64,000 bases of DNA, from assembly GCA_004431415.1 (NCBI GenBank), contig QPMI01000638.1, forward strand, positions 124,001-188,000, read 5' to 3'. The DNA comes from Cyanophora paradoxa CCMP329. Its lineage: Eukaryota > Plantae > Glaucophyta. The position numbers and the translations under genes were made by a program. Positions 527 to 48,081 of the stretch are shown in pieces. Every line of letters starts with the position of its first letter. Within the stretch, counting starts at the first letter, position 1. Under the pieces are notes generated by a model, which worked only from the letters and a program-made list of their open reading frames with translations, had not been told where the DNA came from and made no database searches.

Positions 527-2054
527 TCAGGAGGAGGCGTCGCGGTCGGACTCGGAGCCGGCGGAGCTGCGGGAGGCTGGGGAGCCGCGCAGCGAGTTCA
601 CGCTCTCCGCGTACGCCGCCCCCCGCAGCAGGCTCTCCATCGTCCGCTGCGCCTGCCCCGCCCGCCCCTCCGCCTCCCGCGCCTGCCCCCGCCCCCCGTC
701 GGCCTCGACGGGCGGCGCCAGCAGCGGGGCCGGGCGGGGGGGGCGGGCGGTGGCGGACCCTGCGCTCGGCGGCGGCGAGGGCCTCGCGCAGGGAGGCCGT
801 CTCTTTTGCATGGCCCTCCCGCACCTTGCCCGGCCGCGGCCCGCGTCAGGCGCCCCCCGGGCCCAGCGCAGCCGAGGGCGGCTGTGTACCTCGAGCAGCA
901 GGCGGTCGATGTCGTCGCTCGTCAGCTCCGGCACCTTCTTGGGCGGCCCGCTCTGCGCACGCTTCGCACGCGCCGGCGGGGTGGGGCGGGCGGGGAGGGC
1001 TGGCGGGCCCTGACGCGGAGCACGCGGAGCTCGGCTTCGAGCGCGGCGACCTGCCCGTGCGGAGCGTTCGGGTTGCGAGCGGCGGGCGCCCGCCTCCGAG
1101 GCTCGGGGGCGGCGAGCCGGCCAACGGACCCGCTGCTGCAAGTCCTTCTCCGCGGACATGAACGCCTTCGCCCTCGCATCGATCGTCTCCGCCGCCCGCC
1201 GCTCCGACTCCGAGACGAGCGTCGTGAGGAGGCGCACCTGTCGAGAGCTGTTGATGGCACGTCGACGCGCGCAAGCGGGCCTGTTGATTGGCGCACCTCC
1301 TGCGTCAGCTGGCCGTTTATAGCAATGATGTATTTCTCTGTACGGAACAGGTTTCATCGCGACGCGAGCGGCTGAGACAGCGCGCTGATGCGAACCTCTT
1401 TCCTTGCATGCGCGCTCCTGGTTCATCGCTTCCTCAGACTTCGCCTCCAGCTGTTTCACCCTCAGGCGCAGCTGCGAGTTGACCTGCTGTTCCCGGCGTA
1501 TCACCTTGCGGGGGGCGGGGCGCGTTAATGACAGTGGGCTGGTTCGAAAGCGCTGCGGCGCGGCTGCGGCCGCATGGTGCGCGGCTCTCACCTCCAGCGT
1601 CCCCGAAAGCTGCATCGTAAGCGCCTTGTTGATCTGGCGGCTTGTCTCAGGAATGCGCTTCGCAGCCGCAGTGGGTCAGCCGCACCTCCACCGCCTCCCG
1701 CCCAATCAGCTGCGGATCCGGGGCGGCCGCGCGCCCACCCGAGCTTGTGCGCGGCATCTGTGGCGCGATCGCCTCATCAGCTGAGCGCTGTTGCGGCGCT
1801 CGGCGTCGCTAGCCAGGGAGCACTGGCTCGGAGGAACGCGCGGCGCGGCGCGGGGCGCGGAACTTGGTTTTCGAGCGCGGCGTCGCAGCGCATGCGCAGC
1901 GCAACAAAGACAATCAAAAATGGAAGGCCCGCACCGCGTCCGGAATGGAGGAATGTGCGATGCCGACGCGCCCGATTCCGCCGGAGAGCAGCGCAGGGGG
2001 AGAGAGCGGGGGCGAGCTCATGCACACCTCATGGAGATCTTCTTCGTGCTCCAT
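527..2054 (-). CDS. Multi-exon hypothetical coiled-coil protein
   Basis: Coding-like exons (MEHEEDLHEV..., VIRREQQVNSQLRLRVKQLEAKSEEAMNQE, VRLLTTLVSESERRAAETIDARAKAFMSAEKDLQQR, VAALEAELRVLR, ...SESDRDASS*) separated by GC-rich ~50-nt introns. Heptad-like E/Q/R/L composition; no family recognised. Confidence 0.6.
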
Positions 2055-2205
2055 GTCGCTGCAGCTGGCGTCCGTCGATTCTGCAAGGTTTCTCTACCCC
2101 TCTCCACCGGCCTCCCCCCCTTGTCGGAGGCGTTTATTGCGCGGCCGCATGGCGCGCCTTAGCTGCCGCTAGCGTCAAGTCGGCGCTGAAATCGGCGCTT
2201 CAACT

Positions 2206-5200
2206 ATGACGGGACCGGCGCAAGCCGGCCCGGTTGTCCTTCCAGGCGTCGCAAACGCCGCCGGCGCCGTTCTCCCCTCCCCGCACCTCTCCTCGCCCGC
2301 CGGAATCCCCGCGGTTCTCCTCAACGATGCTGTTCACTCCGCTTCCCCGATCGCACGGAGCCCGGCGATGTTGCAGCCAAATCCGGGCGGTAGCAACCCC
2401 GGCTCGCGCACAGCCTCGGTGTCAGCGCCAAGCGGCGGGGTGCACGGGAGCAGGACGGCGAGCATCCTAAGCTCCGCCTTTTCACCAACGCACGGGTCGG
2501 GCTCCGACCCCTCAAGTCGAGTCAACAGCGTCTTGGACGTGGTGAGCACTTTGCGCGCCGTTTGAAGACGCCATGGCTGAAGCTAGGCTCGCAGAGCGCA
2601 TCGCGTCATGCAAGCGTGAGCACGGCGCCCGTCCGCCCGGGGGGCCCTGAGCCGTACAAGAAGAGCTTCCTCGGCTCCATCGATCTCGCGTGGGCGACGC
2701 GTCTTGAGCTGATCCTCGCCACGGCTTTCTTTCTCTCGGCGGTCATCCCGAGCGCGGTCATCATCGGCCTCCAGTCTGTCCACGCGGCCTCCGCATCGCG
2801 CGCGGGCGCCGAGAGTACGCTCGCGATGCTCGCGCAACACGCACTTTCGGCCGCGCAATCTGCTCTAGAGCTCAGCCTGCGGTGCGCGCCGCCGCGCCCT
2901 CCCCGTCTCGAACGCCGCCGAGGCGCGCGCAGGGAGGTGGAGACGGCGGCCCGGGCGCTCGCGGCGGGCGCGGGGGCGGAGGAGCTGTTGGGCGGCAGCG
3001 CGTCGCTCCTGGCGTGGAGCCTCCTGGACGCGTCCACCGGGAGCAGTCTGGCGGGGTCCAGCGCCCTCGCCGCCGCCCTCCCCCGCCCCCTCACGGGCCC
3101 CCTCCAGCCCCGCTCCCGCCTGCTCGGTCCCCTCGCCCCGCCCCGCCCGCGCCCGAGGCTCGCGTCGACCGCCGCGCAGCGGCCGGCCCCGTCGTCGGAG
3201 GCCTCCCCTCCCTCCTCGTCGCCCACCCGGTGGCCTCTGCCCCGGCTCCCTGCTCGGTCCGCCGCGCGCCGCCCGCGCGCCGCGGCGGGCCCGACGGGGG
3301 CGCAGTGGCGCAGCTGAACGTGACGGCGGCGTGGGAGGGGGCGCTGCGGCGGGGGCGCTCCCGGCGGCCCTCGCCGCCGCCGGCTGGCGCTCGGTGGCCG
3401 GCGCGCCGACGGCGGCGACCGGCCTCGCCCTCTTCGCGCCCTCCCCCGACCTCTTCCACGCGTGCGCCCCGCCCCGCCGCCCCGCGTGCAGGCCCCGACG
3501 CAGGGCCCGCAGCGCGCCGGGCGGCGCGGGCGAGGGGCGGACCTGCCGGCCGCTCGCGCCGCCGCGTGCGCGACGGGGGCGCTGCTGGGGCGGCGAGCCG
3601 CGGCGACGTGACGGCGGCGTGCGCGGCCGCCGCCGGCCCCTCCCCGCTCGCCGGCTACGCGGTCCTCGCCTGGGCGGTGCGCGCCGCCCCGCCGCCCCCG
3701 GTCCTCGCCGCCCCGCGACGCCGCGCAGGGGAGCGGCGAGGTGGCTTCGGCGGTGCGGGAGGCGGAGCGGCTCGCGTGGATCCCCGCGCTCGTCCGCGCG
3801 CCCCGCGCCCCGCGCCGGCGGGGCCCTGAGGCGGGGGCAGGTGGGGTCGGTGCTGGCGGCGGCGCTGGGGGCGGGGCTGGCGGGGTGGATCGCGCGGCCG
3901 GTGAAGAAGGCGGTGGAGGCGGTGCTGGAGATGCTCGCCACGCAGCTCCGGGACCAGGGCTGGAGCGGGCCCCCGGACGCCAAGGGCCGCCCCGCGGGGC
4001 CCCTCGCCCCCCGCCCCAGCCCGACCCGCACTTCGCCGCGGGGCGATCCGGGGCGGGGCCGGGGCGCCCCCGACGGACTCGGAGGGGACGTCTCGCTGCC
4101 GGACTCGGCCGCCGCCGCCGCCGGCGGGCACAGCGCCACCGACGCCACCTCCGGCCCGCCCCGCCCCGCCCCGCCCGCCCCGCCCCTCACCGCCCGCAGG
4201 CGAAGAGTCCGCCGCGCCGTCGGCCCCGCGGAGGCCCCGTCTTCCGCAGCCGCCCGCTGGGCCCGCGGTGCGCGCCCCGGCCGCCCTGCGCGCCGCCCCC
4301 GGCGAGCCGGGCGGCAGCTCTCGTACCGGTCGCGGGCGCGGCGGAGCCTGCTGGGCTCCCTCGGCGTGAAGTTCGTGGCGGAGGGGGCGGGCCTGGGCGC
4401 CCCGAGGCGAGCCCGCCGCCGCTGGAGACCGAGTTCTCGGACGCCGAGGCCGCCGCCCCGCCGGCCCCGGCCCCGCCCTCGCCCCGCGCCCCGCGACCGC
4501 GAGGACGCCGCGGCGGCGCCCCAGGAGGCGTCTCCCGCCCTCGAGGCCGGCCCCGCCTCGCCCCCGAGCTCTCCGCGCTGCCCCCGCTGCCGAGCCTCGC
4601 GGAGGGCGCCGGCGCCAACGCGGCGCAATCGCGGCGCCACTCCTCCCTCTCCACCCTCGTCTCCGTCTGGGAGCGCGGTGCGGCCCGCCCCGCCCCCGGC
4701 GATCTCCGCGGCCGACGCGGCGGCAGACGCGCACGCCGACGCGCGCGCCCCGCCGCGCTCCCGCGCCCTGCAAGCCGCCCAGGACGCCGTCGCTTTCCGT
4801 CCGCCCGCCCGCCCGCCCCGCCCCGCCGGCTTCTCGCGACGCCCGGCCCGCGCGCAGACGCGGCGGCGAGCAGCGCGCGGCGGCGGCTCTCGTGGTTCAA
4901 GCGGCCGCCGGGGCGGGCGGCGCGGCGGGGGCGGGCACGCGTCGGGTCGACCCGGGCGACGCGGCCCCGCCGGCCCCGACCCCGGAGGCGGAGGCGCGCC
5001 CCCCCGCCGCCGCCCGCGCCATGCGGCCTTCGTGACGGGGCGCGCAGGAGGCGCCGGGGATCTTCGGGGGCTTCTCGTGGTACAGCTTCCGGGAGGCGCA
5101 CAGCCTGCACGAGGCCCTCGGGCTCCTCCGCTCCGCCATCCAGCGCGCCACCAGGTGCGCCGCCCCGGCCGGCCCCGGGGCGCCTCGGGGCCGGCGCGAC

Positions 5201-8200
5201 GGGGCGCAGCGTCGACCGCATCAACGAGCGCCTCGAGCTCAAGGTCGCCGACCGCACCCGCGCCCTCCAGAAGGCCCGCAGCCCGCCCCCCGTTGGACGC
5301 CGCTGCGCTGCGTCTTTGCCGGCGCTCACCGCCTTTTTCTGCCCGCCAGGCCGTCGAGCGAGCGCGCAAGGTTCGCCCTCCCGCGCTCGAGCGCTCGGCG
5401 AGGGGCGGCTGCTGACGCGCGGCGCGCCCGGCGGGGCGCGGGCGCAGGAGGCGGCGGAGAAGGAGCGGATCCGGGCGACGCTGGAGAAGATGCGCCTGCA
5501 CGAGGCCGCCTCGATGGCCCGCTCCCAGTTCATCGCCTCGTGCGCCCCCGCTGGCCCCCGCCCGCTTCTGCAGCCGCCCCGCGGGCGCGAGCCGGGCGCA
5601 GGCTGAACCACGAGCTGCGGACGCCGCTGAACGCGATCTGCGGGCTGACGCGCATGCTGCTCGACACGGCGCTGGACGAGACGCAGCGGGACTGGCTCGA
5701 GACCGTCCGCAGCGCCAGCGAGACCCTCCTCGGCCTCATCGCCGACGTCCTCGACTACTCCAAGGCGCCCCGCCCTCCCCGGTCATTTTAGGGGCGCGCC
5801 TGACGGGACCGGCAGCTGGAGTGCCAGAAGCTGCGGCTGGAGGAGCAGCCGTTCGCCATCGAGGACGCGCGCTGCCCCGGCCGGCCCCGCGCGGCGCGCC
5901 TGACGCCGGGCAGGTGGTGGAGGAGTCGTGCGAGCTCGTCGCCTTCAAGGCCGTCGAGAAGGGCCTCCAGGCGAGGGCCCCCCAAGCGGCGGGCCCCGCC
6001 TTCGGGCGCTGACGGGGCGCGCAGCTGTGCCACTGCGTGACGTGGGGGGCGGGGGCGCCGCGGGCGCTGCTGCTCGGGGACTCGTCGCGCGTGCGGCAGA
6101 TCCTCATGAACCTCCTCAACAACGCCACCAAGTGAGCGCGCCACTGAGCGGCGCCGGCGCGCGGGGCGGCCCCGGCGCCGACGCCGGCGGGGTGCGGCGC
6201 GCAGGTTCAGCGACCAGGGCTCCATCGACGTCCGCTGCAGCATATCCATGGAGGCGCCCCGGCCCCCTCGCCCCGCCCCTCGCGCGGCCCGGGCGGCCCC
6301 TGACGCGCCGCAGAACCCGACCTCGGGCCTGCTCCGCGTGACCTGCTCGGTGCGGCGCGGCGGCGGCGGGGGGGCGTGGCGGGGCGCTGCGGGGCGAGAC
6401 GGGCGGGGCGGCGCCGCAGGTGACTGACCAAGGGATCGGCATCGACAAGGCGGCCATCGACACGCTCTTCCAGCCCTTCAATCAGGGCTCAGGTCCCCCC
6501 CGCGCCCCTTCCACGCCCTGCCCCCGGCCCCGCCCCGCCCTGACGCCCCAGCGCCCTCCCAGAGTCGATCTTCCGCAAGTACGGGGGTGCGCGGGGCCGG
6601 GGCGCCGTGGGGGCCTGCGGGGGGCCCGAGGGCGGGGGCCGCTCATGGGGCGGGGGCGGTCAGGGACGGGGCTGGGCCTCTCGATCTGCAAGGAGCTCTG
6701 CAGGCTCATGGGCGACGGCTCCATCAGCGTCTCCAGGTGCCCCCGTCCCGCCCCTTCCCCTCCCGGGCCAGGGTCGGGGCCGAGCGGGGCGCAGCGAGGT
6801 CGGGCACGGCTCGACTTTCACGTTCGTGGTGTTCCTGCGGACGGCGGGGGCGGGGGAGGGGGCGGCGGGGCTGGCGGGGCCTCACGTGCACGAGGCGGAG
6901 GGGGAGGAGGGGGCGCTGCTGCGGGCGGCGAGCCTCGAGCGGCCCTCCGTCGCCGGCGTCTCCCTCCTCGAGTGGAGCCCCCTCCTGCGCGGCGAGTCCG
7001 CCCCCGCCCCCGCCCCCGCGCCCCCTCACCGCCCCGCCCCGCAGGCCGCTCGCTGCTCTTCTACACGAAGAACGAGGTGGGCGGGGGCGGGGCGGCGGGG
7101 TGCGCGGGGGCGGGGCGAGCGGGGCGGCAGACGCTGGCGACGTTCGTGGCGGCGAACGCGTCGGCGTGGGGCGTGGCGGTCGTCCGCTGCGCGCACAAGA
7201 CGGACGTCGCCGCCGCCCTTCAGGGCCGCGGCACCTACGCCTGGGTCATGGTCGACATGCACAGGCCCGCGCCGCCCCGCCCCGTTCGCCCGGCGGCGCC
7301 GCTGAGGGCGGGGCAGCGCGGGGAGGCGATGAAGGCGGCGCGGGGCGGCGGGGCCGGCGCGTGGCGGGCCCCGCAGGAGGTCCGCGAGCGCCGCGCCAGC
7401 ACCTGGGACGAGGCCGTGCGCCGCCCGCCCCGCCCCGCCGCCCCTGCCCGACGCCCCCGCGCAGCAACTCCGCGCCCACGCGCTCGCCGCGGCCGATCCG
7501 GCGGCCGTCCTCGAGGGCGAGAGGAGCGAGGGGAGGAGCGGGAGGAGGCGGAGGCGGGGCGGGGCGGGCCGCGGGGTCGGAGGTGGGGAGCCGGGGCCCG
7601 GGGCGGCGGGGCGCCGCGGCTCGGTGGCCCTCGCCGCGCAGCTCGAGGAGCTCATGCGCTCCCCCGACGGGCCCCCTCCAGCCCGTCCGCCCCGCCCCGC
7701 CCCGCCCCGGTCGCCCCGCCGGCCCCTGACGCTGCGCCCCGACGCCAGGCGCTCGCTGCCGTCATCCTGCTCACCAGCGGGCGGCGGGCGCACGAGTGGG
7801 AGCGGGAGGCCTCCGTGGTGGGGCCGGCCGCGCGCCCCTCGTGCGCCTCGCAACGCCCCTTCGGCGGCGGCAGCTACACGCCGCCCTCGTCGACTCGCTG
7901 CGCCTCAAGGCCCGCCCCCGCCCCCGCCCGCCCGCCCGCCCCGCTCCCCGCCGAGGGCGGCGCAGGAGGCGCGCGGGGAGGGGGCGGGAGCGAGCCGGCC
8001 TCGCCGAGGGCGGAGAGCGCGCGCGGCGACGCCGACTCGGAGCTGCCGGCCGCCTCCTGGCGGGAGGCCCGCGCGAGCTCGCGCGCCCCCTCCGCCCGCC
8101 CTCCGCCTCGCCAGCGCCGCCCCTGCCCTCCCCGAGCCCGCCCCGGTCCGCGCCGCACCCCGGGCGCTCGCCGGCGAGCCGACGGGGGCGCAGGGCGGCG

Positions 8201-10265
8201 GGGAGGGCGCCTCGTCGGGCGGCTGCTGCAGCGGGGCCCGTCGGGGTCGCCGGCGGGGGCGGGCCGGCCTCGGCGGGGAGCTTCGACGTGACGCTGGGGA
8301 GGCGGCACCCGCTCTCGATCCTGGTGGCGGAGGACAACCCCTCAACACCAAGGTCCTCGTGCGCCCGCCCCGCCCGCCCCGCCCCGCCCCGCCTCACCCC
8401 GCCCCGCCCCCGCCGCCACCTCCCCTCACGCCCCGCCCCGTCGTTCGGCCAGCTCAACTTCCTGGTGCCCGCCCCTCCGGCCCCTCCGGCCCCGCGCCCC
8501 GCCGGCCGCCCTCACGCGGGGCGGGGCGGGGCAGCGGAAGCTGGGGTACACGGACGTGGCGCTGGGGACGGACGGGACGCAGGCGATCGAGCTGCTGCGG
8601 GCGCGCTGGCGCCCCGTCATCCTCATGGACGTGCGCCCGCCCCCCCGCCCGCCCCGCCGGGCCCCCGGCCCCTCACCCCGCCCGCGCCCACAGATCCAGA
8701 TGAGCCCGATGGGAGGCGTCGAGGCGCGCCCCCGCCCCTGTGCGCCCCTGCCCCGCGCTGACGCCCCCGCCCGCCTCCGCAGGCCACGGATCGCATCCTC
8801 GCGGTGCGCCCCTGCGCCCGCACGCACGCCCCGCTCTCGCTGACCCTCACACCCCACCCTTCCAGGAATGGGCGCACCAGGTGCGGGGCACGAGCGCGCG
8901 TGGCGCGCGAGGGCCGGGCCGACGCGCGGGGGGTGCGCAGCCGCCGGCGATCTTCGCGGTGACGGCGAACGCGATGCCGGCCGACCTGGACCTGTACAAG
9001 CGCAAGGGTCCGCCGGCGCGCGCCCCACAGGGCCGGCGCGCGGGGGCCGAGGGGGCGGGGCGGGGGGGCAGGCTTCTCGGGGTGCATCGCGAAGCCGATC
9101 CTGGTGGGGGACCTCGTGCGGGCCCTCCAGAGCGTTCCGCCCCTCGAGGCGCCCCCGGACTCCCCGCGCCCCGCCCTGGGCCCCGAGCGCCCCTCCCTCG
9201 CCCCCTCCCCGGCCCTGCCCCAGCGCTCCCTCTCCGCCCCGTCTCGGGCGCCAGCATCGGCTCCGGTGCCGCGCTGCCCGCCCCGGCCGGCACCCGCCGG
9301 GCCCTGACTCCGCCGCAGGCCCCGTCGCGGCGTCGCCGCGGCCTGCGGTGCACCTGGCGCCGCACGCGGGCACGCGGCTGCCGCCGCTCGGCGCCTCGGC
9401 GCCGCACTCGGCGCAGCACTCGGACGCGGAGGGCCCCCCGCTCCCCGCCTTCGCCTCCCTCGCCCACACGCGCGCCCCGCCCCGTCCCACCCTCGCCCCG
9501 CCCGCCCTGCCGCCGCCCTGACGGGACGCGCAGGCCGCCGGGGACGCCGCCGCACGAGCCGGCGGGCGGCATCGCGAGCTCGGGCAGCATCGGGGCGCCC
9601 CGCCGCGCCGCCGCCTTCACGAACGCCTCCGGCAGCGCCGCCGGCGGGCCGGTGCCGGGGGCGGGGGCGGGGAGCGGGCCGGCGGTGCGCAGCGGGACGG
9701 GGATCTTCGACGGCTCGCTGGCGCAGCGGAAGCCGCTGAAGATCCTCGTGTGCGACGACAACCGCGTGAACATCAAGGTGCGGCGGCGCGCCCCGCCGGC
9801 CCCCCGGCCCCCGGGCCGACGCGGGCGGAGGTGGCATTGGCGTACCTCAAGAACTTCGGCTACCTCCAAATCTCCGTGGCGACGAGCGGGAAGCAGGCCG
9901 TCGAGTGCGTCCGCAGGGACCGCCCCGACGTCGTCCTCATGGTCCCCCCCGCCCCGCCCCGCCCCGCCCCGTCGCGCGGGCGGGGCGAGCGGGGCGCAGG
10001 ACATCTGCATGGAGACGAGCACGGCGGGGGTGGACGCGGCGGAGCAGATCAAGGCGGAGCTGCGCGAGCGCTCCCCCGTCATCATCGGCGTCACCGGCGA
10101 CACCGACGCCTCCAGCGCCCTCGAGTACCTGCGCCGCGGCCTCTCCTCCGGTGCCCCGCCCCCCTCCGGCGCCGCGCCCGTCGTCCGACCGCCCCCGCGC
10201 ACGGCGCAGTCATACACAAGCCCCTCGTCGCCGAGGAGCTCCACCGGCTACTCTCCGCCATCTAG
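2206..10265 (+). CDS. Membrane-bound hybrid sensor histidine kinase (2 TM, HisKA, HATPase_c, degenerate REC, 2 REC)
   Basis: TM1 LELILATAFFLSAVIPSAVIIGL; TM2 VGSVLAAALGAGLAGWIARP. H-box LNHELRTPLNAICG (5603-5644), N-box RVRQILMNLLNNATK, G1 VTDQGIGI, F-box LFQPFNQ, G2 GTGLGLSICKELCRLMG. REC1 LSILVAEDN...ILMD/IQM...FAVTANA...IAKP; REC2 LKILVCDDNRVN...VVLM/DICM...IGVTG...IHKP. Many short introns. A 1-nt frameshift in a C-run at ~8340 is probably a sequencing error. Confidence 0.93.
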
Positions 10266-10892
10266 ATCCGCACCTCCTGCGTGCTTGGCGGGGCTCCTGC
10301 CGCCTAGTTTTTTGCCGCCTAGTTTTTTTTTTGCGCTCGGCGAGTCTTTTTGCGAGCGCGTGACTCCCTGGCCTTCAAGTTCAGCCTTCAAGGCTTGCCT
10401 TCAGGGCACGGGCCGCACGGCGGCCGCTTCACGCCATCGCCTCTGAGTCTAGCTCTGGCAGCGAGCAGTATTGCCTAGCTCGCATCGATTTCGCCGCAAT
10501 TTGCCCGGGTCCTCGCCGCCCGATCATCGGATTGCGAGGCCGCCCGAGTCACGCGCAGCGCATGACTCCGATGCAGATGCGTCTTCAGCATGCTTCTTCT
10601 TCTTCTTTTGTGTCTGATGATTGTACAACAAAGCCTTGAAGGAAACCGCGAGGCTTGGGAAAAAGCTGGGAATGCCCCCGAAAGCACATGGGAGTGCGAG
10701 GGGTTGTCGAGGGCGGGCAAGCGCCGTTGAAGGGGACGGATAAACTTGAAACGAGATCGGCTGGAGTGGTAAACGACGGTTGGACGTCGCACGGGATGCG
10801 CCGGGGGGCGGGCGGGAAACGGGGGGCTAGATGGGGCAGGGATGACGGAGGGGGGCGCCGGGGGCCGGGGGCGGGGGGCCTCGTGGCGGGGG

Positions 10893-13800
10893 CTACTCGA
10901 GGAGGAAGACGCCGGGCTCGACGCCGGCCGACACGCTCTCCTCGATCACCCGCAGCATCTCCCCCAGCGACCTGCGCGGGCCCCCCGTCGGCCCCCGCCC
11001 GGGGCGCGCCTCGCGGGGGCCGGCGAACCGGGCGCGGATGATCATGCTGTCGGCGCCCGACGTCTCCCAGGCCCGCCGCTGGCCCTCCACGGGCTCGTTG
11101 GCGCGCCCCGGCCCCTGCGCCGCCATCAGCCGGGCGCGCGGGGCGGGGCGGGGCGGGGCGGGCAGGGCGGGGTGGGCGGGCCGAGTAGGAGGAGGGCCCG
11201 GCGGACTTGATGGCACGGCGGATAGCCAGCTGCGCACGCTCGGGGCTCGTGAACCAGACCTGCCGGCGGGGCCCCGGTGAGGTGGGCGGAGGGCGGGGCG
11301 GGGGCCGGGGGCCGGGCCTGGCGCTGGGTCTCGGGCTGGACGAGGGCGTTGTCGCCGGTGCCGGCGCGGACGACCTGGAAGACGGGGAAGGACTCGAAGC
11401 TGCAGAAGGCCAGGTACTCCGCCTCCGAGAGCTCCCCCGCCAGCGCCCCGGGGCCCGCCGCCAGCGCCCGCGCCGCCCCGCCGCCGCCTCCGTCGGGTGC
11501 AGCTTCACCTTCACCTGCCCCTGCCTCGGCGCCGGCCCCGCGGGGGCGGGGCCGGGCGCGGCGGGCGGGACCTGGCGGCGGCGCGTGTAGAAGTCGTAGG
11601 CGGCGTCGAGGGGCACCGAGCAGACGTGCCAGTCCGCCACCCGCAGGCCCTGCGCCCCGTCAGCTGCCGCCCCGCCCCCGCGCGGCGCGGGGCGGCGCCG
11701 GCGGGCCCGCTCGTTGAAGAAGGCGTCGACGTCGCGGCGGGCGAGGAAGAAGCGCGACGTCGGCTCCGGCGGCGGCGCCCGCCCCGCGTCGCCGGCAGCG
11801 ACTCGGCCGCCCAGCTGCCGCCCACGTCACGTCGGCCGGCCCCGCGGCGCGCCCGGCGGGGCAGGCACCCGAACTCGGGGCCTCGTACACGGTGCGGTCC
11901 TTGGCGCTCTCCACGTAGTACACCGTGATCCCTGCCGCAGCGTCAGGCGCCGCTGCCGCGCCGCGGGGCGGGGCGCGGGGCGCACCGGAGAGGACGGGCC
12001 CTGCGGCCGCCTGCACGAGCTCTCGCCTCCGCTCCCGCAGGCGCTTGTTGACGCGCTCCTCCGCCGCCCGCCGCTGCCGCCCGTCACGCCGGCACCGGCG
12101 GCGGCGCGGCGGGCGCGGCGGGGCGGCACCTGCTCGAGCCAGGTGCCGAAGACGCGGGGCCCGTCGGCGCCGACGTTGGCGATCTCGGCGCGGGGCAGGC
12201 GGTAGGCCCGCATGAAGCCGGAGAACTGCTGCAGGAGGGCGCCCTTCACCGGCGGCAGCCCAAAGTACGACCTGCCCCGCCGCGTGAGCGCCCCGGGCGC
12301 CAGCCAGCGGCGACGCGCGCACCGCGGGTCGACGGGCAGGGGCCCGCAGGCGGCCGGCGGCGTCTCCGACGAGGCTTCACCCTCCGCGGGGGTGGGGGAG
12401 GAGGGGGCGGGGCGGGAGGAGCCCCAGAGCCGGCGGATGCCCTCGAGGTGGGCGGCGCCGACGACGGCGACCTGCGGGGGTAAGGGGGCGCGGGGCGCGG
12501 GGGGCGGGCGGGGGCGGACGACGGTGGAGTGGCGGCGGAGGTCGGGGCAGTCGCGGAGGGCCCAGGCCATGACCTCGTCCCGCTCCGCGATCACCACCCG
12601 CGCCACCACCTTCCAGCGGTACTCCTCGATGCGGCCGTAGCAGTACGCGAGGTTCGCCACAACGTTCTCCATCGAGGGCGCCGAGATCACCGACTGCGCC
12701 GCGCCCCCCGCTCGCCCGAGCGGCGCGGCGCGGCAGGCCGGGGGGCGGGCGCGCCTTGGCGGCGGTGAGGGTGTAGAAGAGGAGGAAGGTCGGCACGGAG
12801 CCGCTCCGCAGGAGCCCCGCCACGAGGAAGCCCGAGAGCGTGAGCGCCTGCCGCCCCGCTCGGCCCCCGGCGCCCCGCCCGCGCGCCTCGCAGCGCACCA
12901 GGAACTTGCGCGCGGTGTGCTCCAGCCGGCGCAGGCGGTCGGCTTCGCGGCCCTCCTCCCCCGCCAGCTCCTTCCGCAGCTGCGTGATCTGCCCCCGGCC
13001 TTCAGCGCCGGCCCGGCGTCGGGCGGCGGCCGGGACGCGCCTCGTAGGGCCGGTCGATGAGGACGACCTGCGCCCCGACGCGCGCGGCGGCCTCTCCGAC
13101 CTGCTGCAGCGTGAGCGGCGCCCTCCGCGCGGCCCTGGAGGACCCACCGCCAGCGCCTCGACGCCCTCCTGGAAGCCGTTCCGCTCGTGTTGGCGCCAGA
13201 ACTCGATTTGTTGGATCACCATTTGGTCCGCGCTCTGCGCCCCCGTCTGCCCGCGGCGGGCGCGCGTGCAGGCGCGGAAGCGCACGTCGATGAGGTACCA
13301 GCCGAGGGCGAGCCGCTCGCGTTGCTTCTTGCGCACGAGCTGCGCTGGGTCAGGGCGGAGAGGCGGGGGTTACGTCGGGCGGGCCTCCTTCGCGAGGGAG
13401 CGCCAGTTCTTCGCCGCGTCTGCCGACTCCTCTAGGGCCGCCCACCGAGTAGGGCATAGCTCTGTCGCCACTGCCTCCGGCCGCACCTCCATTATCAGCT
13501 GCGGCGGATCAGCGCGGCGCCTTCCGCCACCTCGGCTTAAGCGAGTCGCACCCGCCGGGCTTCCTCGGCCGACTCGTGGGATATGTGCATCGATCCGAGC
13601 AGGAACACGCGTCGATCGCCTTCCTGCACGTGTTCTGTCAGTACGCTGAGCGACGAGCGCAGATGCGTATGCACGTACTGTGAGAAGGAGCAGGCGGCCG
13701 GCGCGCACGGCCTGGTCAAGGGGTTCCGAAAGGCCCGTCGGCCATGTCACGTCGGTTTCTCGGATCTCAGCTGCAGGCAGCTCGGCGCTCACAGGCGTCG

Positions 13801-14347
13801 CTTCCTTTGGAGTGCTGGGCGCCGCAGGGGATTCCGGGGCCGGCTCTTGTTCGGGCAAGTCGGCTGCGCCGCTTATGCTGCCCCCGCTGCTGCTCTGGGA
13901 TATTGCTGTTGATGTCGACTGTGCGCGAGCAGGGCACACGTGCAGATCACGGTCAGGCCGGTGAAGCCGGCCAGTCAACGCGCGATCTGCGCAGGCGGAA
14001 CTCAGCCAGGGCGCGGCCGCGCGGGCGCCGCACTGCGCACCTGCCAAGGAACCGCCAAAGAACGACCGTATCCTTCTCCATGAAGAAGCAGCAGCGTGAG
14101 CCCCGGGAGCCCCGGGCACTCGACGACCGGCCGACTGCGGGCGCCGCGCAGCCCAGGGACGGCTCGAGGACACATGATCAATGGTCAACAGCGGGATGGC
14201 AAAGCTCAGTGCGTGCCCGGGAGCCGCTTCCAAGCTCCCGCGGGTGGGCGGTCGGGCCGGGGTCGTTGGACGATGCCCGCTAGGGCCGGCTGCACCGTCG
14301 TGCTCCGGCTGGTGAGCGGCGGCCACGATCCGGGCCCGGCGGGCCAT
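10893..14347 (-). CDS. TraB/PrgY/GumN (Tiki)-domain protein fused to C-terminal Tic22-like domain
   Basis: TraB motifs: RVFLLGSMHISHES, VRPEAVATELCPTRW, VVLIDRP, VVIAERDEVMAWAL, VAVVGAAHLEGIRRLW. Downstream exons in the same gene match Tic22 repeats: LSGITVYYV, FFLARRDVDAFF, VCSVPLDAAY, VKLHP, FPVFQ, VWFTSPERAQ, SLGEMLRVIEE...GVFL. Start codon uncertain. Confidence 0.8.
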
Positions 14348-14574
14348 CGTGCACGGGTACGTGGATATTAGGTCCAGGGGGCTATAGCTTGTTCGTACAC
14401 GCCGTGGGCACGCGCGCGCAGCTGCATGCGCAGGCCCAGGACTTTTGCAATATGAATTGAACAGCGCTAGCTATAGCCAGCCGGCGCCCCATGGCCATGC
14501 ATGGCGCACAGCGGCATGCGCATGGCCAGTACTATATATAGATATATATACGTGTACGTGCTATGAAATTAGCT

Positions 14575-14665
14575 ATAGGCCTAGCGCTAGCTACATGCAT
14601 AGCTGCCATATATATCGTGCATATCATAGTGAACATACAAAGCACAAAACTGCCATTTCACGGGG
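14575..14665. repeat. Dispersed repeat (inverted copy at ~48925-49030)
   Basis: GCATATCATAGTGAACATACAAAGCACAAAACTGCCATTT and the upstream CTAGCTACATGCATAGCT match the reverse complement of 48936-49020. Confidence 0.85.
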
Positions 14666-14851
14666 GAAACGTGAAGCATTACTACAAGCCCCCGAACAGT
14701 CTCCCCCACCCCGTCCGACCATACCCCGGGCCCGTTACTGGATATATTTGACGATATACCATGATATTTGTTTCACTTTCTTGATGGCAAGACTTTCTTA
14801 CAGACTTGGGACGCCACATGAGCCCGCAAGTGCGAGGAGTTCGCTAGAATT

Positions 14852-15410
14852 TCATACTCCTGCACTTGCTTCAATGTGTGCCGCGAGATTACCCTGTGCG
14901 CGCGTGGAACAGACCTTTACTCTGGAGGAGACTGCCTCCGAGTACGCCGTATCGTGAAGCGTTGCGGACTTCAGAGTAGCGTTGTCATCAAGAAGTCGCG
15001 ACACATCGTCGAGCAGGCCACAAACGCGCCGGCGGTCGGCTGTGGCGCGCACTCAGATGTTCACGCGCACGCGAACGGCGATGAAAAACGAACCGAGCGC
15101 GACGTATTCACTGGCCAACGCTCCCTGCCTGCGAGAGCACGTAATTTGCAGGAGCCGGCGCAGCACACTCACGGCGCCGGCGCACGCTTGCTGCAGCACC
15201 AAGTCGACCACACATTCCAGCTCGGCCAGCGCCCCTTCGATCTGCTGCATCGCTTCCATCGAGCCGCACTGCTTCTCTGCGCCGCAGCGATGTTGCTCTA
15301 TAGTTGTCTGGCTCTGGAACGTCTGGTCTGGGAGGACGATGGCTTAGCGAGCCACTGGCAGGGGGACCAGCCGCTTCAGGCTCGAGGCGTTTGTATGCGT
15401 TTCGAGGCGC
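14852..15410 (-). pseudogene. Degenerate coding fragment
   Basis: Two abutting same-frame ORFs (15053-15259, 14852-15052) split by one TGA, with another stop upstream. Protein-like composition; no family recognised. Confidence 0.3.
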
Positions 15411-41444: not shown

Positions 41445-44400
41445 CGGCGAAGGGCCGACAGCGCCAGGACTTGCCGAGGCAGGCGGGACTCCAGATATAC
41501 CGACACTGATATCTGATTCTAAAGATGTTGGAGAAGGCTGTTTGATGTCAGAATCAGCAGGAATCACGGGATGTTGAATTGTTGGAGTTGTGTTGACAGG
41601 AGCAGGGATTGCTGGGTCCTGCCGGACTCCTGATGGCCCAACACCTGAAGCGAGCTGGAGAGCCTTGACTGCATTGGCTGCAGAGCCTGCTGCAGAGCCC
41701 TGAAGTAATGCTTTGATTTCCGCAAGTGCGCCTGTTGATGTAAGATTTGCCTGCTAAACAGTCAGAATAGAACAAAAATGAAAAAAAATCACAACTTTAA
41801 CACCGATTCAGGGTTTGTCGCAAGTGCCAAAATGCGGCCAAGAACGGAAGGATCAACTATCGCAGCTGCATCCTGCGACCTACAGTCGAAGCATACGTCA
41901 TTTTACGAAGCGAGCCCCGTCAACGGAGCTCCAGCGCTGCTCACCGCGCTTTCCCAGCTCTTGCTGCCATGGGGGGCTGCGGGACGCCCTCCTTGCCGGC
42001 CGGCCGCCGTCCTCGCTCCACCGACGTTGGACGTGCCTGCTGCCCTGCCGGCCTTGCCATTCCTTCTCCGCCCACCGCCGGCCCCCTGCACACGGCCCCT
42101 CAGCGCGAGCCCCGGTCACCGGAGCCCCCGCGCTGCTCACCGCGCCCCAGCTCTCGCTGCCGTGGGGGAGGGCGGGGCGCCCTCCTTGCTCGCCGGCCGC
42201 CGTCCTCGCTCCGCCGTCGTTGGACGGGCCTGCTGCCCTGCCGGTCTCGCCATTCCCTCTCCGCCCACCGCCGGCCCCCTGCACACGGCCCCCTCAGTGC
42301 GAGCCGCGGTCACCGAACCCCCAGCGCTGCTCACCGCGCTTTCCCAGCACTCGCTGCCGTGGGGGAGGGCGGGGCGCCCTCCTTGCTAGCCGGCCGCCGT
42401 CCTCGCTCCGCCGACGTTGGGCGCGGCTGCTGCCCTGCCGGCCCCGCCATTCCCTCTCCGCCCACCGCCGGCCCCCTGCACACGGCCCCTCAGCGCGAGC
42501 CACGGTCACCGGAGCCCCCCGCGCTGCTCACCGCGCTTTCCCAGCTCTCGCTGCCGTGGGGGGCTGCGGGGCGCCCTCCTTGCCGGCCGGCCGCCGTCCT
42601 CGCTCCGCCGACGTTGGACGCGCCTGCTGCCCTGCCGGCCCCGCCATTCCCTCTCCGCCCACCGCAAGGCCCCTGGACACGGCCCCTCAGCGCGAGCCCC
42701 GGTCACCGGAGCCCCGGCGCTGCTCACCGCGCTTTCCCAGCTCTCGCTGCCGTGGGGGAGGGCGGGGCGCCCTCCTTGCCGGCCGGCCGCCGTCCTCGCT
42801 CCGCCGACGTTGGCCGTGCCTGCTGCCCTGCCGGCCCCGCCATTCCCTCTCCGCCTACCGCAATGCCCCTGGACAAGGACCCTCAGCGCAACTTCCAGTC
42901 ACCGGAGCACCCGCGCTGCTCACCGCGCTTTCCCAGCTCTCGCTGCTGTGGGGGAGGGCGGGGCGCCCTCCTTGCCAGCCGGCCGCCGTCCTCGCTCCGC
43001 CGTCGTTGGACGCGCCTGCTGCCCTGCCGGCCCCGCCATTCCCTCTCCGCCCACCGCCGGCCCCCTGCACACGGCCCCCTCAGCGCGAGCCCCGGTCACC
43101 GGAGCCCCTGCGCTGCTCACCGCGCTTTCCCAGCTCTCGCTGCCGCGGGGGAGGGCGGGGCGCCCTCCTTGCTAGCCGGCCGCCGTCCTCGCTCCGCCGA
43201 CGTTGGACGCGCCTGCTGCCCTGCCGGCCCCGCCATTCCCTCTCCGCCCACCGCCGGCCCCCTGCACACGGCCCCTCAGCGCGAGCCGCGGTCACCGAAC
43301 CCCCAGCGCTGCTCACCGCGCTTTCCCAGCTCTCGCTGCCGTGGGGGAGGGCGGGGCGCCCTCCTTGCTAGCCGGCCGCCGTCCTCGCTCTGCCGACGTT
43401 GGCCGTGCCTGCTGCCCTGCCGGCCCCGCCATTCCCTCTCCGCCCACCGCAAGGCCCCTGGACACGGCCCCTCAGCGAGAGCCCCGGTCACCGGGGCCCC
43501 GGCGCTGCTCACCGCGCTTTCCCAGCTCTTGCTGCCGTGGGGGAGGGCGGGGCGCCCTCCTTGCTAGCCGGCCGCCGTCCTCGCTCCGCCGACGTTGGGC
43601 GCGGCTGCTGCCCTGCCGGCCCCGCCATTCCCTCTCCGCCCACCGCCGGCCCCCTGCACACGGCCCCCTCAGCGCGAGCCCCGGTCACCGGAGCCCCGGC
43701 GCTGCCCACCGCGCTTTCCCAGCTCTCGCTGCTGTGGGGGAGGGCGGGGCGCCCTCCTTGCCGGCTGGCCGCCGTCCTCGCTCCGCCGACGTTGGACGTG
43801 CCTGCGGTCCGTTTTGCTTCGTTGGTCCGGCAGATATAGGCCTCTTGTCGTGTAACCTGAATAATATTTTAGTCTCCAATAGCAGTCTGTCCGATCAATT
43901 GAGGCTCCGACCTCATTTGCACGGGTTCCCCGCTGTTTACTGGAAATTTGGCAATTTGGCTGACGCTGACTTGAGCTGCTGTGGTTGATGCGGCTGGGGC
44001 TGGGGCGGTCGTGGTGGGCGGCGCGGCGTCCGGGGGAGCGGCGGACTCCAGTGCCACTGCCGTTGCTGCAGCGGGCGTGGCTGCAGCAGTCGCAGCAGCT
44101 ACTGGTGCAGCCATGGAAAGCGGCGCGGGTTGTGGAGGCGCTGCTGGGTTAGATGCCAGCGCCGGCGCTGCAGCAGTCGCAGCTGCTGCTGGTGCAGCAG
44201 TGGAAAGCGGCGCCGGTTGTGGAGGCGCTGCTGGGTCGGATGCCATAGCTGGTGATGCAGCAGTCGCAGCTGCTACTGGTGCAGCCAGGGGGGGCGGCGC
44301 GGGCTGCGGGGGCGCTGCTGGCTCAAACGCCACAGACGGCGCTGCAGCAGTCGCAGCTGCTGCTGGTGTAGCCAGGGGGGACGGCGTCGGTTGTGGAGGC

Positions 44401-44774
44401 GCTGCTGGGTCGGATGCCATAGCTGGCGCTGCAGCCCCAGCTGCTGCTGGTGTAGCCACGTGGAGCGGCGCGGGTTGTGGAGGCGCTGCTGGGTTAGATG
44501 CCAGCGCCGGCGCTGCAGCAGTCGCAGCTGCTGCTGGTGCAGCCGTGGAAAGCGGTTGTGGAGGCGCTGCTGACTCAGACGCCACAGACGGCGCTGCAGT
44601 TGTTGCGGCCGCTACCGGTGCAGCCATGGAAAGCGGTTGTGGAGGCGCTGCTGACTCAGACGCCACATGTACAGACGGCGCTGCAGCAGTTGCAGCCGCT
44701 GCCGGTGTAGCCAGGGCATGCGCGGCTAATGTCGCTGCTGGCAGCTGCGGCTCTGTCAAGTGCGGCTCCGTCAT
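41445..44774 (-). CDS. Hypothetical Ala/Pro-rich repeat protein with a minisatellite-filled intron
   Basis: Exon of ~300 aa made of ~30-aa repeats (AAPAAAATAAAPALASNPAAPPQPAPLS). Then short exon VTRQEAYICRTNEAKRTA, exon SQDAAAIVDPSVLGRILALATNPES and terminal exon QANLTSTGALAEIK...GAVGPSP*. Confidence 0.5.
41910..43805. repeat. GC-rich tandem array, ~196-197-bp unit x ~9.6
   Basis: The unit GCGCTGCTCACCGCGCTTTCCCAGCTCTCGCTGCCGTGGGGGAGGGCGGGGCGCC... recurs about every 196 bp. Confidence 0.95.
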
Positions 44775-45095
44775 ACTGCGCGCATGCACTCCCCGGCCGC
44801 AGGCTACGTATTTTCGAATTCCGGGGTAGCCGATCTTGGTAGGCTGCAGCGCATTGATAACACAGGCATGCTAGCTGCGGACATCGCAGGAGCTTGAGCT
44901 GGGTCTGTGCTACCTACGGGGGCGACAAGCCTGCGGGCAACGCAGGCAGGGCCCGCTGTAGGGGGGTACGCGGTCCCCCTATGCTGCCCAAACTACGACG
45001 CGGCCTGCGCCGCAGCTTGGGGGGCGGGGCTGGCCCGCCGCGGGCCGGAGCCGGCCAGCAGAAGGGGCTTGAGGCGGAGCCCCGCGTCCACGCCC

Positions 45096-45180
45096 GAGAG
45101 GAACCGCAGCAGGATGTTCCTGCGCATGCGATTACAGACGGAGAGGAACCGCAGCAGGATGTTCCTGCGCATGCGATTAC
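45096..45180. repeat. 45-bp tandem duplication
   Basis: GAGAGGAACCGCAGCAGGATGTTCCTGCGCATGCGATTAC occurs twice. Confidence 0.85.
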
Positions 45181-45297
45181 TGAATGATAATTCAATGATT
45201 AACTCGACACACAAGCACGTATAAGTACAGCTGCATGCGCAGACGATTTAATTCGAAATGCACTGCAGACAGACTTGCATGTGCAGCGGGGCCCGCT

Positions 45298-45750
45298 ACG
45301 CGTCACCGCCGTCGCGGGGGCCCGCCACGAGGAGGTCGTAGTGGGGGGGCCGGATGACGCTGCCGGGGTGGAAGCGGAGGTTGATCACGACGCCGGAGGG
45401 GCCGGGCGCCCCCGAGGGGACGGCGGGCCCGGGTCCTACAGGCTCAGGCCCCGGGGCGGACGGCGCGTCGCCGGTAACGAGGTCCGGGGATGCATCGGCG
45501 AGGCCCGGCCCGGATCCGGAGAGGGCTGGAAGGGCGCCACGCCCCCTCGGCCCGGCGGCCTGCGGAGGGAGCGATCAGGGCGGCGCGGGCGCGGCCACGG
45601 GACGTGCGTGGGGGACGCGCCTTCTTCCCCCCCGCCTTCTTCCCCTTCTTCTTCTCCACTCGGCGCTCCGTCGCGGGGCGAGCTCGGTACATCTCGGCGG
45701 TAGTGTTCCGAGGAATAGCCAATCGAGGGATTGTCAGGGGCAACCCGGGC
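45298..45750 (-). pseudogene. Chimeric gene fragment carrying an 87-bp copy of the EF-hand gene's first exon
   Basis: 45664-45750 matches 21857-21943 at 85/87, then diverges into Lys-rich and Pro-rich sequence. No ATG evident. Confidence 0.45.
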
Positions 45751-45854
45751 AGTAGGCTGCAGCTGTCTGCAGACGGCGGCGGCTAGATCTGGTCTGCTAC
45801 ATCTTAGATCGGCGCCAGTCTTCGCGCAACAAGATCGCCGTGCATCGCCGCCAC

Positions 45855-48081
45855 ATGGGAGCGCTGCCCGACATGGGCGCTCGGCTCATCGATAGTGCCG
45901 GTCGCATGGTTCCGTACGCCATGCATGCGCTGGTCGCGCGTTGAGGTTGACGCTGAGCATGCAGAGAGTGGCCGCTCGGGACTGGCAGTGGAGTTGCGCC
46001 CCCGACATCCGTCTTGCTAGCCGTGATCGGCAGCGAGCGAAGCGGAAAGAGCACGTTGCTCAACGAACTCCTCGGCACGAGTTTCCCGGTTCACAGACAG
46101 ACGATTGGCGTACAAGCCGGGGAGGTCGACGCCGTCTGCGTGTCTGCTACCGACACAGCCGTCGAAGATCGCGCATTCGTCGCCCTTGACTGCGGCGCTT
46201 CGAAATCTGAGGTCTGATCTCTGCGCCGCCGAGTTCTCAGATCGCTCAATGCTATGCCAGGATCTGCTGCACAAAGTCGGAATGTTCGCGTTGGCTGTGT
46301 CTGACATAGTCGTTGTGAACATGTGGTTCCACGACATCGGCCGGTTCCGTGCATCGAACCACGCCTTGCTCTGTGCTCTCTTTCAGGCTACCAGTCAGAT
46401 TGAAGACCACCCGTGAGATTTCAATCGATGCTTTGTATGATAATGCAAGAACCCACAAAGACTTTCGCAGCACTCGATCGAAGACAGTGATGATTCTTGC
46501 TATCAGAGATGCGGAAATGGAGACGCCCTCGGGAACTCTGCAAGCTCAGGTGATGGCTGATCTTCAAAAACTGTGGGCTAGTGTTCCGAAGGTACATGCT
46601 TAAGCCTGAGCAAAGCAAGTCGCCATTGACCTGCGGTTACAGAGCTCGGCTAATACTACTATTACACTGGAAGATATCTTCGATATCTCCATCGTTATGT
46701 TCCCACATTTCACGTATGCACGCGATGGCTTTTTGGAACAGGTCCGCCGTCTAAAAACCAGGTGCATCTGAGAACTTCTTTGTTCGATGACGGGCTTCCG
46801 ATCCCGTCACCGCAGACTTGAAGATGTGTTGTCGAATGCAGCAATCGGACTACCCACGAGGGAACTGCAGCACTATTGTTCCCGCATGTGGGTACGACGT
46901 GCTGCAGTCTGCCTCCCGTGATGCACCGATTGTTATATGGCAGGAAAGCATTGCAGAAAAGAGAGCAATCAACGTTCTTTCCGAGCAAGAGCTTCTCGCG
47001 GCCTACTTGTGCAATCAGTCCAAGTCAAAAATCCTCCAAGATATCCATGCCCAGCTGCATGAGGCTGTCGGCAAGGAGCGGCATGGATTTTTGCCAGATT
47101 TCGCAGTGAAGGCATGCCAGCTAGTAGAAGAAGGGCTTGGTGAGTCTCGTTGTTGTCTAATCTGCCTGTCCCTCTGTGAAGTACTGCAGATGTGTTCGCA
47201 AAGGAGACTTCATGGTCCAGGAAACACTGGATTGGGTGGGGGCTGCAGCGGAAGGGACTTGTGGAGGGTATGCTGGTGGAGGTCAGTCGAGCATCTGAGC
47301 TGCAAATCCCTCGGATCAAGTAACATTGCTAACAATTTCCCGTGGATTTCAAGACAAACTTCTGATACACACGCAGGACGTTTGTGATTGCTAGTTTCAA
47401 GGACGCCTTGTCTCTCCTTTCCTCCCTTGAGAACCTCGATGAGTGGGCATCAAACTCGATTGAGTCACACGTGCAGCAAGCAAGGGAGCTGATGAGGGGT
47501 GGGCTGGTTTCTTCTTGTAGTCCGTTTTGTGCAGTGACATTTATTGCAGGACTGCAGTTCCAGCCAGACCAGATATCTGATTTGCTTCAGGCCGAGAGCG
47601 TCCATGCTTTTCTTGCCTCTGCTAGCCGGCAGGAGATGGAAGTGCGATCCCTTCACGCCGAGCTGAGTGAAATGCTGATCGAAAGAAAAAATGAGCTTGG
47701 CTTTATCATAGTACGGGCTCTTCGCAAACATTTCCGCTTTCCCGTGTCCATGCTAACCCTCGACTTAGGTTCGGAGCCGCCAAGCGCCTCTTTGTCACGC
47801 CCAACCCTCGGAACGCGAGCCACCGCCTCCCAAGTTCAGCCGTGCTCTCTTTGTTCCTATTCTGTTTTTTTGCGTCGCTGGGGTCCTTTTCGACAATGGC
47901 GAATTCCGCTTCGACCTCTCCAAATGGAACCCATTTGCTCGCCCTGCAGCACACGCTTCAGAGAGCTCACAGTAGCAAACCTCGATCTGGACCAGACGGT
48001 TTTGCCTCAGCCCTACCATCCAACATCAACAAATGCAGGCTAGAGAAATGGAACCCATTCGCTCGCCCTGAAGCACTCTAA
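45855..48081 (+). CDS. RHD3/Sey1 (atlastin-type) GTPase-like protein, divergent
   Basis: LAVIGSERSGKSTLLNELLGTSFPV, FALAVSDIVVVNMWFHDIGRFRASNHALL, AIRD, DLQKLWASVPK, LEDIFDI...PHF, SEQELLAAYLC, C-terminal hydrophobic segment. Confidence 0.88.

Follow-up and report, generated by a model that had tools for sequence, protein, structure and literature searches.

We analysed a 64,000-nucleotide (nt) stretch of the genome of the glaucophyte alga Cyanophora paradoxa CCMP329 (GenBank assembly GCA_004431415.1, contig QPMI01000638.1, positions 124,001 to 188,000), hereafter the window, and followed up one apparent gene within it whose two halves recall a TraB-family protein and the plastid import component Tic22. 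Our best explanation, to which we give about an even chance of being right as a whole, is that a single nuclear gene on the minus strand, running from an ATG at window position 14347 to a TAG at 10893, encodes a two-domain protein made of a TraB domain and a divergent Tic22-like domain. This gene corresponds to the public Augustus model g21730 less its exons 1-4. From N- to C-terminus the predicted protein would consist of a low-complexity region, the TraB domain, a linker rich in Ser and Pro, a helical connector of ~75 residues, and a Tic22-like domain of two repeats.

The TraB half and the junction

The model g21730 (eukprot tig00021464_g21730.t1; P0001 in what follows) comprises 786 amino acids (aa) in 23 exons on the minus strand of contig tig00021464, a naming that follows the 2019 PacBio assembly of C. 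paradoxa by Price et al. (PMC6704402). Its sequence could be rebuilt exactly from 23 minus-strand exons of the window, from 15250 to 10896, and a word search with the open frame that spans the junction between the halves had P0001, the protein itself, as its sole match. All searches with a spliced protein used this database entry; exons were otherwise searched singly.

The assignment of the N-terminal half to the TraB family, first made from the letters of the DNA alone (the sequence-only reading), was borne out by profile searches. Pfam PF01963 matches P0001 at an expectation value (E) of 5.7e-12 (46.5 bits, gathering cut-off 26.8; 49.9 bits for aa 190-500), and NCBIfam TIGR00261 matches it at E 4.9e-18 (65.2 bits, below the curated cut-off of 178.35, the best stretch being profile positions 4-120). 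By profile match, P0001 is a member of the TraB family but falls outside the TIGR00261 subfamily. The candidate residues singled out earlier (GSMH, ELC, ERD and GAAH) can be read directly in P0001, where the motif set is intact: GSMH at aa 207, TELC at 233, LIDR at 320, AERD at 423 and GAAH at 450. By analogy with the Tiki/TraB literature, these motifs would have catalytic or metal-binding roles. When exons were searched against Pfam singly, TraB came out weakly (E 0.069) and Tic22 not at all, exons of 13-59 aa being too short, and against Protein Data Bank (PDB) sequences the TraB half gave only weak, irrelevant matches to phosphoglycerate mutase. The sequence-only reading had also suggested that a hydrophobic stretch of this half could anchor the protein in a membrane. 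The maximum of a 19-residue Kyte-Doolittle scan is a borderline 1.52 at aa 356-374, is broken by an Arg, and sits inside the TraB fold with the LIDR and ERD motifs on either side; we dropped the anchor as unsupported.

What makes the locus unusual is the passage from this domain into the C-terminal half. The open frame 11827-12690 on which the fusion was first proposed does exist, as an open reading frame (ORF) of 287 aa within a 462-codon stop-free stretch (11830-13215), and every motif quoted in support of it was found on the minus strand where it had been placed. Such an open frame is uninformative when taken alone, because at a guanine-cytosine (GC) content of ~79% composition itself predicts long open frames: the probability of a stop is 0.0097 per codon, and an open run of 287 codons has a P of about 0.06. 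Throughout the surrounding block of 74-82% GC (2000-14000), stretches free of stops and 100-570 codons long turn up in every one of the six frames, including long antisense ORFs over the gene. Price et al. describe bidirectional overlapping ORFs by the thousand for this genome (PMC6704402), and composition alone predicts those in the present block.

Other features of the DNA speak more directly to the number of genes, and we conclude that there is probably one gene here rather than two, because the junction shows no dip in GC, intron 14 is canonical, and coding bias extends upstream of the sole internal ATG. The earlier claim that no intergenic gap parts the halves held up: GC stays at 78-83% throughout 10900-13100 and does not dip at the junction (12100-12450), unlike at both gene ends, where it drops to 45-59%. 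Intron 14 (Table 1) uses the donor GTGCGC, the commonest in the gene, and, at a GC of 0.86, shows no bias by codon position. The following exons 15 and 16 are strongly biased by codon position in the reading frame carried on from the TraB domain. They encode a connector that is predicted to be helical and was the most confident part of a single-sequence AlphaFold2 (AF2) model, with a predicted local distance difference test score (pLDDT) of 55-73. Between the TraB motifs and the Tic22-like part there is a single ATG, in exon 15 at 12213 (Met515). Upstream of it the exon has G or C at the third codon position (GC3) in 18/19 codons versus 8/19 at the second (GC2; P 0.001, a bias covering 19 codons), and downstream of it in 28/28 versus 15/28. 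The minus strand carries just 14 ATGs over 14400-10890, and the interval 12212-11127 is devoid of them in every frame, so that the Tic22-like part could be translated solely from ATG 12213 or from upstream of it.

It could nevertheless be that the predictor fused two adjacent or overlapping genes, a TraB gene and an independent Tic22-like one whose ~272-aa product would begin at Met515, and several observations count in favour of this and against a single gene. A product of 272 aa would have the typical size of a stand-alone Tic22, and 55 codons separate ATG 12213 from the first Tic22-like motif downstream, much as in cyanobacterial Tic22. The linker, with GC1 0.74, GC2 0.82 and GC3 0.94, is indistinguishable in composition from intron-like sequence and bears no coding signature. 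TGA stops occupy its other two frames, at 12379 and 12248, so that a product ending after the TraB domain is conceivable through an assembly indel or an alternative donor. The authors of the genome state that its Augustus models need manual curation and that gene predictors based on hidden Markov models (HMMs) have trouble where genes are densely packed, end to end, and rich in short introns (PMC6704402), and the 5' end of P0001 itself seems to be a wrong merge (see below). The same architecture was found in no other protein by phmmer among 1.84 billion representatives, and exact-product look-ups for P0001 and for P0001:515-786 returned none on record. Set against these points, the TraB frame runs without a stop down to 11829, so that two genes on this strand would have overlapping ORFs; GC does not dip, and there is no space for a 3' end and a promoter; the coding bias carries on upstream of the supposed start; intron 14 is canonical; and the assembly was polished with Quiver and corrected with Illumina reads (PMC6704402). 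We therefore regard two fused genes as rather unlikely. Of the single-gene fusion as originally put forward, the side that stands is genomic, in that GC, intron 14, codon bias, the distribution of ATGs and the frame all favour one gene; the model comes with its authors' warning about curation. The supplements of PMC6704402 that were searched make no mention of g21730.

The Tic22-like half

The C-terminal motifs quoted in the sequence-only reading lie in P0001 at aa 496 (SYFGLPP), 570 (LSGITVYYV), 607 (FFLARRDVDAF), 630 (VCSVPLDAAY), 683 (FPVFQ), 707 (VWFTSPE) and 762 (SLGEMLRVIEE). A further one, VKLHP, is in the same frame just beyond model exon 19, and in the alignment of the unspliced frame (window 11452-11826, minus strand) the match stops short of it.

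We compared this half with Tic22 by means of a profile made from 45 sequences, 31 cyanobacterial and 14 of the green lineage. A DNA pattern for VPVFTI-x4-G-x-P-L retrieved 120 loci, nearly all cyanobacterial, from a genome collection, and these gave 105 full ORFs; four that were checked matched the Pfam Tic22 profile at E 1e-35 to 1e-55, and genuine Tic22 ORFs score 121-187 bits. Green-lineage Tic22 came from metagenomes through a DNA pattern for F-x-GVPVFQ-[SA]-x-x-L, about 15 loci of that scan, several of them on contigs labelled as human-gut metagenome, being set aside as chance matches (ORFs of 31-34 aa). When the cyanobacterial Tic22 alignment was used in a word search aimed at eukaryotic Tic22, the 120 matches listed were all of the cyanobacterial type. 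Many cyanobacterial Tic22 clusters (P0003, P0018, P0022 and others; PF04278 E about 1e-105) bear the Joint Genome Institute (JGI) name 'nickel transport protein', and one the name 'acylphosphatase'; these names look like propagated misannotations.

With HMMER at maximum sensitivity, P0001 aa 543-786 (244 residues) was scored along with 60,000 shuffles and 76 decoys, the latter being stop-free translations from the same window and hence of the same composition. The combined profile gave 8.3 bits, a score reached by 3/60,000 shuffles (P about 5e-5) and by none of the 76 decoys. The eukaryotic-only profile gave 2.6 bits (292/60,000 shuffles and 0/76 decoys reaching that score) and the cyanobacterial-only profile 0.9 bits (337/60,000 and 1/76). 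Repeat 1 by itself scored 8.1 bits against the combined HMM (i-Evalue 1.4e-4, profile positions 45-122). Profile-profile alignment with hhalign against the 45 sequences gave a P of 2.1e-4, with a probability of 45.7% and a score of 34.5, and covered 151 collinear columns over both repeats; with the 31 cyanobacterial sequences only, P was 0.018. Together the HMMER and hhalign results stand above noise but below usual levels of acceptance. No score among 76 decoys and 163 shuffles exceeded 19.3, and as negative controls the TraB half gave a P of 0.87 and another frame of the window 0.39. In repeat 1 the alignment pairs LSGITVYYV with L..VPVFTI, SRFFLARRDVDAFF with vFIsq.DA..F, and HVCSVPLDAAYDFY with V.pVSL..VY; in repeat 2 it pairs FESFPVFQVVRAG with F.GVPlF.A.gG, and QVWFTSPERAQ with iP.FF.kedLq. 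The Tic22 signal appears only in the spliced, collinear arrangement, which was itself predicted without reference to Tic22. Taken together, these comparisons suggest a likeness to Tic22 that is statistically non-random, and we think it quite likely that the C-terminal half has a genuine, very divergent Tic22 ancestry. We call it Tic22-like, and not a member, because it scores below the curated threshold of the family.

Against this assignment stands a series of results that fit a different view, namely that there is one gene whose C-terminal half is a lineage-specific alpha/beta extension of a TraB protein, its resemblance to Tic22 being convergent or due to chance. The sequence-only reading had proposed running the Pfam Tic22 profile on the spliced model, and this gave no match even at E<=10: PF04278 (gathering threshold 23 bits) did not match P0001:500-786 at E<=1 or any of six sub-slices at E<=10, and NCBIfam gave no Tic22 match to aa 496-786 at E<=10. 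A phmmer search of the half against the 1.84 billion representatives found only itself, a word search with it found no match, and a sequence search of the PDB returned nothing relevant, only artefacts involving pentatricopeptide (PPR) repeats. By sequence comparison the C-terminal half is an orphan. The single-source profiles reach an empirical P of just about 5e-3, each repeat on its own is weak by hhalign, and repeat 2 alone is weak by both methods (hhalign P 0.045, HMM 0.8 bits). BLASTP of repeat 1 against repeat 2 found no similarity, leaving the internal repeat undetected. When the window was scanned in six frames with our own Tic22 HMM no exon stood out, the best exon of the gene scoring 0.9 bits (rank 7/1416), and the same scan found no canonical Tic22 elsewhere in the window. 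Two canonical Tic22 genes are located elsewhere in Cyanophora (PMC3652856 Table S1), and the hypothesis was framed after the motifs had been seen. Yet five to six motifs follow one another in Tic22 order over the 151 columns, the score climbs with the diversity of the profile, the scores far exceed those of composition-matched nulls and controls, and there is a precedent for a divergent relative in At5g62650, of 529 aa (PMC3652856). We consider an extension unrelated to Tic22 unlikely. The Tic22 part of the earlier claim thus finds nothing in Pfam or NCBIfam and survives at the level of remote homology.

Without an alignment, AF2 gave a model of the half with pLDDT 41.8, which was unusable and was not taken to Foldseek. 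Seeded with the Tic22 alignment, it reached a pLDDT of 64.9 (84-94 in repeat 1, and 37-64 in repeat 2, which was poorly modelled even so), a result that is circular by construction. Foldseek of this guided model had 8xks_I, 4ev1, 8xqw_Q and 4e6z as its top matches (E 4e-4 to 1e-2, TM score 0.28-0.35), with the same circularity. With its low TM scores, the guided model would indicate only that the half is compatible with the Tic22 fold, a two-repeat, mixed alpha/beta 'butterfly'. The matches 8xks_I and 8xqw_Q are chains of the Chlamydomonas Orf2971/Ycf2-FtsHi import motor.

Finally, the locus or its 3' half might be non-functional, either as a decaying duplicate or as a mis-predicted open frame in GC-rich DNA. 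Long open frames in every frame of the block and the orphan status of the C-terminal half would be in keeping with this. We nonetheless find it very improbable: GC3 is 0.88-1.00 versus a GC2 of 0.36-0.66 across all 3' exons in their modelled frames, every intron of the 3' half keeps intact GT/GC-AG boundaries, the TraB motif set is intact, and the spliced exons jointly match Tic22 in collinear order, as unrelated frames do not.

Known relatives and what a fusion might do

Tic22, a chaperone of the intermembrane space or periplasm, is among the few components of plastid import that were inherited from the cyanobacterial ancestor. In Chlamydomonas it is a subunit in the intermembrane-space module of an ATP-driven import motor and binds the POTRA domains of Toc75 (bioRxiv 10.1101/2024.09.02.610899). 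We compared the C-terminal half with canonical Tic22 (PF04278; Anabaena 4EV1, plant Tic22-III/IV and Chlamydomonas) for motif order and region size. It has the same order of motifs (L.gVPVF.i, vFis..DA..F, V.pVSL..VY, F.GVPlFq, iP.FF.kedL and I.V..LE.vi) across two repeats, in a region of similar size, about 220-245 aa. Unlike canonical Tic22, it is sub-threshold in Pfam and only about 17-21% identical to family members, and in its repeat 1 (ITVYY) another residue takes the place of the invariant Pro of VPVF. Stand-alone Tic22 also differs in that the module of P0001 lacks its own signal or transit peptide and sits at the C-terminal end of a TraB protein. Plastid presequences of Cyanophora follow a rule of an N-proximal Phe, as in the canonical Cyanophora Tic22 (MASFAA...); neither of the candidate N-termini here (MARRARIV... 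and MQQIEGAL...) has one.

A further comparison is with the At5g62650 class of land plants, in which a divergent Tic22-related region is likewise embedded in a longer protein. At5g62650 itself has a fast-evolving, non-canonical Tic22-related region, with about 335/529 residues homologous and about 21-23% identity to Tic22 (PMC3652856). In a Physcomitrella protein of this class, 'VFRFYFNKDDAAEYV...CSLDAAYKYY' resembles 'SRFFLARRDVDAFF...CSVPLDAAYDFY' of P0001, by eye only. Unlike P0001, the class has no reported TraB domain.

For the TraB half, the comparison is with a family whose Tiki branch, in vertebrates, consists of metalloproteases; outside Tiki, we know of no proof of protease activity in TraB proteins. 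Like Arabidopsis TRB1/2/3, human TRABD and Tiki, P0001 has a TraB domain above the Pfam threshold with the set GxxH...E...R...ERD...GxxH. TRB1/TRB2 (PMC9513094) and TRABD (PMC12329661) are proteins of organelle outer membranes, and TraB-family proteins in general are organelle-surface proteins with no established enzymatic role in eukaryotes (PMC9513094). A transmembrane anchor forms the C-terminal end of TRB1/2; TRB3 is cytosolic and has no anchor (PMC9513094). Unlike in TRB1/2, the TraB domain of P0001 continues into about 320 residues with no clear transmembrane segment.

If TraB and Tic22-like domains do belong to one protein, they would lie on the same side of a membrane, because there is no clear transmembrane segment between them. 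By analogy with Tic22, the Tic22-like module would hold unfolded or hydrophobic client segments, or dock an envelope partner such as the POTRA domains of Toc75, and would in this way supply clients, or a location, to the TraB domain, itself a putative Tiki-type hydrolase or a scaffold at an organelle surface. The 'chaperone-coupled processing module' of the plastid envelope proposed in the sequence-only reading is speculation built on such analogies. A fuller version, which we consider less likely than not, is a genuine glaucophyte TraB-Tic22 fusion located at the plastid envelope, in an organelle that here has a peptidoglycan wall. It would join a Tiki/TraB-type hydrolase to a module derived from Tic22 that binds clients or docks on POTRA domains, and might serve as a hitherto unseen protease-chaperone or tether-chaperone unit of import or quality control. 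Its C-terminal half would then represent a third, fast-evolving Tic22 lineage, comparable to At5g62650.

That such an architecture had gone undescribed appears right for the literature, where none of the papers searched named both Tic22 and TraB, but not for the databases, where the fused model is public and its precomputed Pfam label is TraB only. The combination of TraB and Tic22-like domains would, if real, be a plausible new architecture built from two known families. Were the fusion true, it would provide a 'Rosetta-stone' hint from an early-branching alga that TraB proteins act on or near proteins in transit into organelles, and would open both families to study by assays of localisation, client binding and hydrolase activity. 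Were the join an artefact, Cyanophora would still have a third Tic22-like gene, highly divergent and overlooked by standard annotation, and the model would need correction.

Gene ends, introns and surroundings

Exons 1-4 of P0001 very probably represent a false 5' merge, because the 815-nt 'intron' that parts them from the rest (14801..13987) crosses a TA-rich region of 45-55% GC and because their own GC3 is just 0.63-0.82; no credible Pfam match was found in them. A (TA)n-rich stretch lies within this intron at about 14400-14900. Upstream of model exon 5 the sole in-frame ATG is that at 14347, and the first coding exon that would begin there (13679..14347) encodes a low-complexity N-terminal region rich in Ser, Pro and Ala, in which we found no Pfam match and no Phe close to the N-terminus. 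The features of the gene are listed in Table 1.

Table 1. Window coordinates of the proposed gene and its parts
Feature	Position	Strand	Remarks
Exons 1-4 of P0001 (aa 1-95)	14802..15250	-	probably foreign to this gene
Likely first coding exon	13679..14347	-	ATG 14347; unbroken frame into model exon 5 (13986-13679)
TraB/PrgY/GumN-family domain, P0001 aa 198-462	12424..13623	-	Pfam and NCBIfam match; motif set
Nine TraB exons	13623-13552, 13498-13385, 13339-13286, 13234-13148, 13100-13041, 12988-12899, 12847-12755, 12693-12520, 12471-12424	-	
Exon with hydrophobic stretch ALTLSGFLVAGLLRSGSVPTFLLFYTLTAAK (LSGFLVAG..., aa 360)	12755..12847	-	Kyte-Doolittle scan
S/P/E-rich linker GSSRPAPSSPTPAEGEASSETPPAACGPLPVDPR, 3' part of exon 14	12323..12423	-	shares the reading frame of the TraB exon
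Intron 14, in the linker	12272..12322	-	51 nt, GT-AG, GTGCGCGC...CGGGGCAG; multiple of three, without a stop
Exons 15 (12271-12130) and 16 (12073-11986), aa 496-572	11986..12271	-	connector between domains; coding-type bias
Tic22-like repeat 1, exons 17-19 (11931-11891, 11814-11707, 11649-11509)	11509..11931	-	motifs (LSG)ITVYYV, SRFFLARRDVDAFF, HVCSVPLDAAYDFY
Tic22-like repeat 2, exons 20-23 (11431-11318, 11259-11182, 11114-11029, 10971-10896)	10896..11431	-	motifs FESFPVFQ, QVWFTSPERAQLAI, MIIRARSLGEMLRVIEE, VFLLE
Stop codon TAG	10893-10895	-	GC drops to 55-59% over 300-500 bp downstream

Introns of the GC-AG type usually account for roughly 1% of introns in eukaryotes, and P0001, with 6 of its 22 introns of this type and 16 GT-AG, has a far higher share; the excess could be either a real trait of a GC-rich genome or a result of imprecise exon ends in the model. 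Donors of the GC-AG introns within 10896-13384 (minus strand) read GCCCGC, GCGCGT, GCGCGC and GCCCGG. All introns but the one of 815 nt (21/22) span 45-77 nt and are 58-93% GC, and their shortness fits the account of many short introns given by the authors of the genome (PMC6704402). Along the gene from 13986 to 10896, GC3 climbs, the 5' exons having about 0.65-0.8 and the 3' exons 0.9-1.0; GC2 stays at 0.3-0.65, and the introns of the 3' half have a GC of 0.8-0.93.

A convergent neighbour occupies 8740-10446 on the plus strand, about 450-650 bp from the stop codon of this gene. Its exon-sized frame 9750-10262 has a weak match to Response_reg (PF00072, E 0.0095), and the strings 'KILVCDDNRVNIKV' and 'PDVVLMV' suggest that it may encode the receiver domain of a hybrid kinase or response regulator. 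Farther along the window, a second block of high GC (42001-46000, GC 0.68-0.75) has an unusually strong strand asymmetry, with a GC skew of -0.20 and then +0.13 and an AT skew of -0.33.

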